Sequence record: NC_074632.1
Length of the DNA: 23,666 bases
Strand: one strand, 5' to 3'
The translations under genes and the position numbers were made by a program. Of the stretch, positions 1,441-23,325 are shown piece by piece. Within the stretch, counting starts at the first letter, position 1; each line of letters starts with the position of its first letter. The notes under the pieces were generated by a model. The model did not search any database. It was given only the letters and a program-made list of their open reading frames with translations, and was not told where the DNA came from.

Positions 1441-1500
1441 TCAGGTTACATATATTATTTCTATGATTTGAAAATTTTGGTTGCCAACCTGCAATTTGTT

Positions 1501-1528
1501 TGATTTCATGATAGAAAGATTTAAATAG
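1501..1528 (+). promoter_or_regulatory. Early promoter (BRE + TATA)
   Basis: TGATTTCATGATAGAAAGATTTAAATAG upstream of ATG 1562. Confidence 0.8.
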
Positions 1529-1561
1529 CTTGAGTGAGCAGTATATATTAGGGGAAGAAAA

Positions 1562-1792
1562 ATGATAAATCAAATCAAAATTAAAAATTTTGATGAGTGC
1601 ATAAAGTTTTTTGGTATACCAAATCTATCATACAGCCAACTAAGTGGTTCAGAGCAAATATTGTTTGGGGTTTGCAATAAGTTTTTCCGTCTGGGCAAAT
1701 TGGATTTTGACGATATAGACTACGATATTTTGGACATTCAAAACCGAAGTAAATTAGAAAAGTTAATTCTTGAATTATTAGGCAGTTTTTGA
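1562..1792 (+). CDS. Hypothetical early protein (76 aa), candidate anti-defence gene
   Basis: ATG start, purine-rich leader, dedicated promoter. Confidence 0.75.
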   Translation: MINQIKIKNFDECIKFFGIPNLSYSQLSGSEQILFGVCNKFFRLGKLDFDDIDYDILDIQNRSKLEKLILELLGSF

Positions 1793-1810
1793 TTTTTGGT
1801 GATGATAAGC

Positions 1811-1987
<177 letters not shown>

Positions 1988-2112
1988 GTTATTTATTTTT
2001 CTTTTTTTCTGTTTTTCTATTTCTTTCTTTGTTTTTTATTTTATTTTTTTATGCACTATTTTTTTCACATTTGTAATACTAATTGTAAAGTTAGAAATAG
2101 TCTGCTTAATTA

Positions 2113-6879: not shown

Positions 6880-6980
6880 TATACCTTATATTAATAATAT
6901 GAATATTGTGTAATTTTGATGTTTTGTTGTAAACATGCATATACATAATATTAGGTATATGCAATTTTCGTATTCAATTT
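6875..6980 (+). promoter_or_regulatory. 106-bp late regulatory module upstream of MCP
   Basis: 30-mer 6875-6904, near-perfect palindrome GCATATACATAATATTAGGTATATGC 6937-6962, CGTATTCAATTT 6969-6980; colinear with 13211-13316. Confidence 0.75.
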
Positions 6981-7017
6981 TTATAAGCTTTTAAAAATAA
7001 TAATAAATTGACGAGAA

Positions 7018-21310: not shown

Positions 21311-22372
21311 ATGCTCATTTACTACGTTTACCCAATGCACCATGACGTTAGTTTCAAATTTGTTGCACTAGAACATATCAAAATGCTAAAAAGCGAATAT
21401 ACTGTCTACGATATTCCAGAATTGAATTTTTATCAGTTTACACCATATGGGAAACCGCTAACATTTATCCATCCATTCTTTTACGGCATGGTAAATTGGA
21501 ATGATGTACAATGGTCATTTTTCAAAATGTACAGATCAAAAGTATCAAAAATAATTGGAATAGAAGTTGCAGACAGTGATAAAATTGCAGAAAAATACAT
21601 CGATATCGCAAACTCATGGGCGGATGCTCTTATTGTAAATTCCAAATGGTCTTACAACGCATATATAAATTCAGGCTTGAAAATTCCAATTTTTGTAGTC
21701 CCCCACAATTACGATCCAAAGCTTGAAGTCTCAGATGATCAACTTAAAGTTTCACCAGAAATCAAAAAAATTGAAGAAATAAAAAACGAAAAGAAAATCA
21801 AAATCATACTATTTTTCGCATGGCATTCAGCGTATAGAAAAGGTGACGATTTATTTCAAAAAATAGCAAGACAAATACAAAAAGAACGGAATGACATTTA
21901 CTTTATTGTAAAATCTCCAATGCCACGCCAAGATTTGAATGACCTAAAGCTTTTTAATATTACTGGCGTCATACCGTTTGACGATATCGTCAAGATGTAT
22001 CGTATCGCAGACGTATTGCTTTTGCCTTCACGTGGCGGATCATTTGAATTGAACGGTCTTGAGGCTTTGGTTAGCGGGACACCAGTTATTGCGCCTGATG
22101 AAGGACCTTGGACTGAATATTTCCCACCGTCACTGAAGTATTTACTAGCAAAAACTGTAAATCATCCAATCGTTTTGCCTGGTAATCCAATTCATATCGG
22201 ACAGGGAGTAGAAATTTCAATAGATGATGCAGTAGAGAAAACACTAAAAATTCTAGATAATATTGAAGAAGAAAAAGCAAAAGTAAAAAATGAAATTGAT
22301 TTCTTCCACAAAAATTACAGTTTTGATGCAGTAAAAAGGAAATTACTAGACGTAACATCTACCTTCGTCTAG
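21311..22372 (+). CDS. GT-B (GT4-like) glycosyltransferase
   Basis: YRKGDD and LLPSRGGSFELNGLEALVSGTPVI. Confidence 0.9.
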   Translation: MLIYYVYPMHHDVSFKFVALEHIKMLKSEYTVYDIPELNFYQFTPYGKPLTFIHPFFYGMVNWNDVQWSFFKMYRSKVSKIIGIEVADSDKIAEKYIDIANSWADALIVNSKWSYNAYINSGLKIPIFVVPHNYDPKLEVSDDQLKVSPEIKKIEEIKNEKKIKIILFFAWHSAYRKGDDLFQKIARQIQKERNDIYFIVKSPMPRQDLNDLKLFNITGVIPFDDIVKMYRIADVLLLPSRGGSFELNGLEALVSGTPVIAPDEGPWTEYFPPSLKYLLAKTVNHPIVLPGNPIHIGQGVEISIDDAVEKTLKILDNIEEEKAKVKNEIDFFHKNYSFDAVKRKLLDVTSTFV

Positions 22373-23191
22373 AACTTTTTTTACATATTTTATTTGTTCT
22401 CTTAACCCAATCACTGTAACATTGCATTTTGTTGCAATTTCATATTGATAAATTGGATATTTCATATTGCTAGCAACATAATACAATATTGCGCCCGCAA
22501 ATATTCTTCTGGACCTACCGCTTATGTCAATTTTTTGAGATAGTTCGATAGCTTTTTGAATTATTTCAATTGGCAAACCAAGTCTTTGTCCGCATTCCTT
22601 TATTGCAACATCAGTTGCTAATACTGGAATTTTTTCATCAAGATGTTTTAAAACCTTAAAATATACATGCTTTAGCTCAGATTTCAAAATTCCTGTTAAG
22701 TCAAAAACTTTTCTAGAATATTCCTCAAAAGAAATATCAATTTGAAATTTCCTAAATGCGACATAAATACACGCTAGCGCAACAATTTCGTAGCCATAAT
22801 GTCTTAGGAATTTTGCCTTCCATACTTTTTGCAACAATCTACCTGCCTCCTCTTCCACAAAAGCCGGCGCATCCAATTTTGGCGCCATTGTCCGTAAATA
22901 TTTCAATGCCTGTATTAAAACCCTATCATCGCCTGGATATATCGCACCTATCGTAGATTTTTTTGGTTTTGGTTGGGTAGTCGGCAAAAATCCAGAATTT
23001 GTATATAAAGTTGGCTTTATTGTTTTCGCTCTAGATTTTTCATCTCTGTCTTCTTGCGTATATGCCTTCCATTCTGGACCTTGATCTACAACTCTATCTT
23101 CTATTACTTCGCCAGTCTCTGTGCAGATGTACTCTCCTCTTTCTGCATCAAAAATTATTTTATTTGAAGGACAAATAATTTCGCTTTCCAT
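22346..23191 (-). CDS. tfb: Transcription initiation factor B (TFB/TFIIB) homologue
   Basis: [35 protein letters not shown] (Sulfolobales-type B-ribbon and start of B-reader), two cyclin-fold repeats, C-terminal HTH. Confidence 0.92.
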   Translation of the reverse strand: [281 protein letters not shown]

Positions 23192-23325
23192 GTGAAAATC
23201 TAAAAATGACTACATTTTTATAACTTGATGAAAATAGATGTATGATTATGTACTGTTAGTTCAAATTTTAAAATCATAGAAATAATATGGCAAACTTGAA
23301 AAAAATAGCAGACAAAAAAAGAAAA

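Follow-up and report, generated by a model that had tools for sequence, protein, structure and literature searches.

A rudivirus-encoded TFB with a host-like B-ribbon, a remodelled linker and a rewritten recognition helix

To our knowledge, archaeal viruses have no RNA polymerase, and they were thought to rely wholly on the TBP and TFB of their hosts. A general initiation factor belonging to such a virus would correspond, in archaea, to the sigma factors of phages. Among cellular factors, the TFB2 of Pyrococcus furiosus is divergent in both its B-reader and its B-linker and still initiates transcription, with an opening defect that is partly rescued by TFE (PMC13502027). TFB homologues carried by viruses were named vTFB in a 2022 review, in which a preference for viral promoters is not established (PMC9501531). 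Here we analyzed the vTFB of Acidianus rod-shaped virus 3 (ARV3; MN876842.1), a member of the Rudiviridae (genus Hoswirudivirus) from Pozzuoli, Italy, whose host is A. brierleyi; its complete genome of 23,666 bases is the window to which all positions refer. The window and the ARV3 record are 100% identical over the 3.7 kb compared and agree in their gene coordinates. The gene, ARV3_gp32, is an open reading frame of 281 codons for amino acids at 22346..23191 on the minus strand, identified by the frame itself, by Pfam and by its annotation as "putative transcription initiation factor B". An earlier note on this DNA had guessed that the gene was already annotated, which is borne out. In the paper describing ARV3 (bioRxiv 10.1101/2020.01.16.907410), the only mention is of a "transcription initiation factor" that Italian rudiviruses alone possess. 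The gene is already annotated and flagged in the review, and with its trimmed linker it represents a variant not yet described within a known family; our new contributions are an anatomy domain by domain, an analysis of selection and a negative promoter comparison.

We compared the protein with TFB1, TFB2 and a second TFB1-like paralogue (which we call TFB1b) of Acidianus, Metallosphaera, Saccharolobus and Stygiolobus, as well as with viral homologues and metagenomic relatives, and calculated identities against A. hospitalis TFB1. The B-ribbon (residues 6-44; 23060..23176, minus strand, like all features of the gene given below) is of the TFB1 type, with two cysteines only (C7 and C23), and is 80% identical to the reference (28 of 35 positions), versus 54% for cellular TFB2. 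The corresponding values for vTFB and TFB2 were 23% and 33% in the B-reader, 16% (plus a 20-residue gap) and 42% in the B-linker, 27% and 29% in cyclin 1, 23% and 32% in cyclin 2, and 30% and 65% in the helix-turn-helix. Outside the ribbon, 60 of 237 positions (25%) are identical to TFB1, and given this rate the ribbon score has a binomial probability of 1.9e-11. In the two most important regions, cellular TFB2 has the reverse bias. The close match of the N-terminal ~45 residues to Sulfolobales TFB1, noticed earlier from the sequence, is therefore confirmed, and the asymmetry is real when conservation is measured per domain against host TFBs (16-30% in all domains other than the ribbon).

Codon comparison of the ribbon between virus and host TFB1 gave a proportion of nonsynonymous differences (pN) of 0.08-0.12 and of synonymous differences (pS) of 0.61-0.77. 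Among the four viral genes, those of ARV3, SSRV1, MRV1 and ARV2, the ratio of nonsynonymous to synonymous rates (dN/dS) in the ribbon was 0.04-0.09. Between MRV1, ARV2 and SSRV1, values were 0.14-0.29 for the linker and the cyclin repeats, and the helix-turn-helix gave 0.19-0.55. The helix-turn-helix ratio exceeded that of the ribbon in every informative pair (0.19-0.98 overall), and no other domain had so high a ratio in the ARV3-SSRV1, SSRV1-MRV1 and SSRV1-ARV2 pairs. Purifying selection acts on the whole gene, and very strongly on the ribbon. We rejected recent gene conversion or recombination as the source of ribbon conservation because the synonymous sites of the ribbon are saturated; its likeness to TFB1 is thus due to selection.

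The boundaries of the B-reader and of the B-linker were transferred to our Sulfolobales alignment from P. furiosus TFB1, a placement that we take to be correct. In that protein, the B-reader comprises a helix (40-47), a loop (48-58) and a strand (59-64), and the B-linker a strand (71-76) and a helix (84-98) (PMC13502027). The B-reader remnant of vTFB (residues 45-58; 23018..23059) keeps the helix EWKAY.. and R54 of the loop, where VG has become AK. It is followed by a remodelled linker (residues 59-88; 22928..23017), predicted to be disordered, in which NSGFLPT stands in place of the HD.GLST strand (TNSGFLPT over the whole motif) and is followed by PKPKK. The basic B-linker helix of TFB1 (..RLEVLRWRKWQIRAR..) is gone, with PKPKK and a short spacer instead. 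As a result, 46 residues separate ribbon and cyclin repeats, versus 66 in TFB1, and residues 55-88 contain 5 K, 5 P and 6 T among 34 residues. In a control, AlphaFold2 run on host TFB1 with the same sequence set predicted a helix immediately ahead of cyclin 1 (93-110), while none was predicted in vTFB 55-85. N65-T71 and K75-K77 do not vary among the four Italian rudiviruses, and the remodelled linker shows conservation, not decay. The earlier note had held that the rest of the B-reader and the B-linker were replaced by a shorter K/P/T-rich segment. The shortening, the composition and the 20-residue gap were found as described; the replacement is less complete than that, since the B-reader helix and R54 remain and what is lost is the loop VG, the HD..ST strand and the B-linker helix.

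Mutagenesis of Methanocaldococcus jannaschii TFB has defined two sensitive clusters, EWR and RxRVG, with V93 and G94 among the positions worst hit for recruitment (PMC3025549). At these positions, vTFB retains EWK and the invariant R54, while V is changed to A and G to K (F in MRV1 and ARV2). The B-reader loop is only partly intact because these sensitive residues, V and G, are changed.

In the recognition helix (residues 258-270; 22382..22420), 7 of the 10 canonical positions (VTEVTVRNRY in TFB1) are changed and the arginine is retained. The rewriting of VTEVT(V/I)RNRY reported earlier was confirmed to the letter. Alignment to human TFIIB pairs R264 with R286 and I261 with V283, which we take to be the two base-contacting residues in the human structure of TFIIB with the B recognition element (BRE). 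The arginine equivalent to R264 is invariant, not only among the viruses but across all 32 aligned TFBs. At the position equivalent to V283, the four viruses have I, A, S or T, and the remaining helix residues vary too. Orthologous promoters (those of the major capsid protein, MCP, and of vTFB) are nearly identical between the viruses. An invariant arginine within an otherwise variable helix, together with conserved promoters and the raised dN/dS of the helix-turn-helix, suggests relaxed BRE reading rather than a new specificity.

Profile searches place gp32 inside the TFB/TFIIB family, yet far from a standard TFB. Pfam detects the TFIIB zinc ribbon at residues 6-43 (PF08271; 42.6 bits versus a cut-off of 29) and, twice, the TFIIB cyclin repeat (PF00382; 49.2 bits versus a cut-off of 23.6), and residues 6-267 match human TFIIB (E = 2e-18). 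The whole-protein score for NCBIfam PRK00423 was 118.8 bits, below the cut-off of 384. The AlphaFold2 model has a mean predicted local distance difference test score (pLDDT) of 79, with three ribbon strands, a helix at 46-52, disorder at 55-85 and a core of two five-helix bundles mostly above 90. Foldseek matched this model to the TFB core of P. woesei (1D3U_B; E = 1e-7; template modelling score 0.61 by target) and to TFIIB chains of pre-initiation complexes. The first cyclin-like repeat (residues 89-183; 22643..22927) has five helices with pLDDT > 90, a 4-residue insertion and a net charge of +4; the second, together with the C-terminal helix-turn-helix (residues 193-276; 22364..22615), has a net charge of +6. 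Both repeats are net basic, as in cellular TFBs. A predicted complex of the vTFB core with Acidianus TBP scored 0.01, which weighs neither way on binding. No viral TBP-like partner was found by Pfam scan of eight ARV3 proteins (gp33, gp30, gp28, gp06, gp09, gp10, gp17 and gp24).

A single clade (100/100) unites the four rudiviral vTFBs, and its stem measures 1.78 substitutions per site. This clade lies within the Sulfolobales TFBs and outside the TFB1 clade (99/94), in an unresolved bush of accessory paralogues. Forcing vTFB and TFB1 together costs 14.6 log-likelihood units (approximately unbiased test, AU, p = 0.005), a value to be read in view of the long branches involved and of a constrained group that was named after the tree was seen. 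The source of vTFB was probably a gene other than canonical TFB1. As the ribbon has two cysteines only, a TFB1-like source is indicated rather than a TFB2-like or TFB3-like one. Our best guess from the sequences is that vTFB was acquired long ago from a TFB1-like accessory paralogue of the Sulfolobales and kept by four Pozzuoli hoswirudiviruses. The idea of a captured host TFB, put forward in the earlier note, stands insofar as Pfam and the tree show a TFB-family gene of Sulfolobales origin on a virus; it probably does not stand for canonical TFB1 as the source.

The vTFBs of SSRV1, MRV1 and ARV2 are orthologues of the ARV3 protein (45-52% identical) and share with it the deletion, the NSGFLPT..KPK motif, the near-terminal position and the promoter. 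The ARV3 protein is the most divergent of the four, with a different recognition helix and C-terminal tail. The 3' end of the ARV3 gene overlaps the convergent glycosyltransferase gene gp31 by its last 27 nt (22346-22372), and MRV1 has the same arrangement. Further vTFB relatives were sought in genome contigs by a single-protein scan (none), in IMG/VR (ARV2 itself only) and in JGI metagenomes (none above 35% identity). A word-based protein search returned SSRV1 as the only close relative and missed MRV1 and ARV2, so that absence from its results is weak evidence.

Two other viruses of Sulfolobales, YNP1 and YNP2, likewise encode TFB-family proteins. These nest in the cellular TFB2 clade (100/100) and hence represent an independent capture. 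Unlike vTFB, they retain a linker helix as well as a recognition helix of near-canonical sequence, lack both ribbon cysteines and carry an extra C-terminal four-cysteine (CxxC..CxxC) ribbon. The YNP2 (1498-2520) and YNP1 (1498-2502) proteins start with a cysteine-less half ribbon that is TFB1/TFB1b-like rather than TFB2-like. Because a 2026 preprint reports that TFB2 drives a division-phase transcription wave in Sulfolobus, YNP1 and YNP2 might touch the host cell cycle.

Two observations concern the cellular genes of Acidianus. A metagenome-assembled genome of A. hospitalis and Ca. A. copahuensis both encode a third full-length TFB paralogue of ~290 aa, ~61% identical to TFB1, with a TFB1-type ribbon, a linker shorter by 10 residues and RSRAG or RSRAS in place of RSRVG; we know of no functional study of it. 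In two Acidianus genomes, the TBP gene lies ~2.7 kb from the TFB2 gene. None of the codons ATG, GTG and TTG precedes the first TBP repeat in its frame (1459-2049, minus strand in one stretch), which makes ATT or ATA the probable start codon.

The likely promoter of the vTFB gene (23208..23227, minus strand) consists of CAAG, a TATA box TTATAAAA (23216-23223) and then ATGTAGTC, and is conserved in all four viruses. It is of an ordinary TATA class. Three promoter classes are visible in ARV3. Upstream of gp02, gp03 and gp05 stands a purine-BRE class (AGAAAGATTTAAATA); in a second class, to which the vTFB gene's own promoter belongs, TGT..C follows the TATA box; and structural genes have promoters in which ATTSAAT adjoins the TATA box and a TATTAGGTATA-like box lies upstream. 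In the MCP promoter, ATTCAATT at 6972-6979 abuts TTTTTATAAG at 6978-6987, and this box is conserved in SSRV1, MRV1 and ARV2. The statement that no purine run precedes the TATA box of this promoter was correct (6972-6987). The suggestion built on it, namely a factor for BRE-poor late promoters, gained no support from comparison with SIRV2, ARV1 and SRV, which lack the gene and share the classes. Purine-BRE terminal promoters and BRE-poor internal promoters occur together in all seven viruses. The purine content at positions -7 to -2, counted from the best TATA box, was 0.61 in the four vTFB carriers (n = 53) versus 0.67 in the other three viruses (n = 53; Mann-Whitney, p = 0.18), a crude comparison in which TATA boxes were picked automatically, without transcription start site data, and in which the genomes are related and not independent samples. 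Since viruses without vTFB show the same classes and a similar purine content, a dedicated BRE-poor class loses its only comparative argument.

ATTSAAT occurs beside TATA boxes 16 times in ARV3 versus 8.2 expected and 16 times in SSRV1 versus 8.1 expected, with 16 reached in 5 of 100 shuffles in each; no enrichment was seen in SIRV2. We do not claim this motif as a vTFB site, as most matches are intragenic and the SIRV2 MCP promoter has GTGAAT by its TATA box. In ARV3, the motif stands directly before the TATA box of gp11, gp14, gp25 and gp27. Promoter regions were compared at 6950-6987 (MCP) and upstream of gp11, gp21, gp24, gp25, gp27 and gp29. Most of these have a TATTAGGTATA- or TATAAGGAATAT-like box ~60-70 nt upstream, clearest for gp14, gp21, gp24, gp25 and gp29. 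SSRV1 has TATGAATATG-like boxes at corresponding places, including ahead of its vTFB gene, and SIRV2 has an analogous ATACATTATATAATGTAT box. These upstream TATTAGGTATA/TATAAGGAATAT-like boxes are probably sites for some regulator.

The genes gp02, gp03 and gp05 share a common promoter (GATAGAAAGATTTAAATAG/GATAGAAAGATTTATAAG) at about 990-1035, 1515-1560 and 2125-2170, with a purine-rich BRE, a TATA box and a leader with a GGGG/GAGG site. Its core matches the motif described for early anti-defence genes (PMC11065993). The same core upstream of terminal genes, AGAAAGA followed by TTTAAATA, is also present in SSRV1, ARV2, SIRV2 and SRV, and ARV1 has the close variants AGAAAGT followed by TTTAAATA and AGAAAGC followed by TTTATATA.

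What vTFB might do can be judged from its anatomy and by analogy; it is probably a means by which the virus directs transcription in its host. The reading to which we give the highest weight, at a rough probability of 0.45, is that vTFB acts as an alternative initiation factor that recruits the host polymerase, reads the BRE weakly and opens promoters poorly. It would be made from its canonical TATA promoter in the right-terminal block, and as this block is transcribed inward, expression is probably early. The ribbon, being 80% identical to that of TFB1, would dock on the dock domain of RNA polymerase, and the two basic cyclin folds may sit on TBP-bent DNA. Contact by the helix-turn-helix would be mostly non-specific, through the retained arginine. 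Host-like docking, a core bound to TBP and DNA and a non-specific helix-turn-helix would together amount to such a factor, one that depends little on a purine-rich BRE when it brings host polymerase to TATA promoters. As in P. furiosus TFB2, poor unaided opening is to be expected, because vTFB has no B-linker helix; it would lean on TFE, on high temperature and on AT-rich start regions, and the conserved NSGFLPT..KPKK segment may assume part of the opening role. The likely benefit would be more polymerase on viral templates, or viral transcription that continues when host TFB1 is limiting. Several points weigh against an active initiation factor: both residues changed in the RxRVG cluster, V and G, are sensitive in M. 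jannaschii; a protein without the B-linker helix could be inactive in initiation; the gene is absent from most rudiviruses, on a distribution that is provisional; and no promoter class specific to vTFB carriers was found relative to SIRV2, ARV1 and SRV. The role is directly testable, since Sulfolobus transcription can be reconstituted in vitro.

The same anatomy could also serve a competitive inhibitor or decoy. The ribbon, by far the most constrained part of the protein, would then occupy the polymerase dock, perhaps with the core on TBP-DNA, and shut off the host. Lacking the B-linker helix, and with its loop VG and HD..ST strand changed, vTFB would trap polymerase in dead-end closed complexes or titrate it away from host TFB1; the TFBs of P. 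furiosus and M. jannaschii require these linker and loop elements to open promoters (PMC13502027, PMC3025549). Inhibitors that bind RNA polymerase are known in Sulfolobales, namely the viral RIP and the host TFS4 (PMC9501531). However, a pure polymerase sink needs neither well-kept basic cyclin folds nor a helix-turn-helix with an invariant arginine, and the remodelled linker has been conserved, not left to decay. A general blocker would also harm the virus, which has no polymerase of its own and has host-like promoters. We therefore consider a decoy rather unlikely.

Stimulation of TFB1-dependent initiation in trans on selected promoters, without replacement of TFB1, has a precedent in the UV-induced Sulfolobus TFB3, which has a ribbon and no B-finger and activates only together with TFB1 (PMC7289017). 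The reader and linker of vTFB are likewise degenerate. However, the Acidianus TFB3 candidates (~180 aa; 182 and 183 aa) have a four-cysteine ribbon and lack the EW reader helix, the second cyclin repeat and the helix-turn-helix, all three of which are present in vTFB. The latter aligns poorly with them and is not of the TFB3 type, and a co-activator of this sort would surprise us. A decaying passenger gene with no present function would account for a core only 26% identical to TFB1, for the very long stem of the viral clade and for absence from most rudiviruses. It is nevertheless highly improbable: the frame is intact in four viruses whose synonymous sites are saturated, dN/dS is well below 1 in most domains and pairs, the promoter is conserved and the fold is confidently predicted by AlphaFold2.

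A bolder form of the alternative-factor reading, which we hold to be a long shot, is that vTFB is a minimised initiation factor working without a B-linker helix, in which NSGFLPT..KPKK makes a new kind of contact with the polymerase cleft or the upstream fork and a relaxed helix-turn-helix fires TATA promoters regardless of their BRE. If so, the virus would own a private route to polymerase that is proof against host regulation, for example when host TFB1 is lowered in stress or dormancy. With the docking ribbon kept, the opening helix removed and the DNA-reading helix loosened, vTFB is in effect a natural mutant, and could reveal which parts of TFB/TFIIB are really needed for initiation at high temperature.

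Compared with known systems, vTFB shares with Sulfolobales TFB1 the order of ribbon, B-reader helix, two cyclin repeats and C-terminal helix-turn-helix, as well as the two-cysteine ribbon and the BRE-contacting arginine. It differs from TFB1 in the absence of the B-linker helix, in the replaced loop VG and HD..ST strand and in its weakly conserved core, including the helix-turn-helix, which is normally the best conserved core part (65% even in TFB2). Sulfolobus TFB3 resembles vTFB in being a paralogue that has no functional B-finger and works with the same polymerase, but is half the length, with a four-cysteine ribbon and neither a second cyclin repeat nor a helix-turn-helix. The best functional analogy is P. 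furiosus TFB2, a full-length factor with intact ribbon and core and a degenerate reader and linker, which is active and opens promoters poorly. Unlike vTFB, it is cellular, comes from a different phylum and has an independent origin; its linker is divergent, whereas that of vTFB shows a clean helix deletion, and its recognition helix is not reported to be rewritten.

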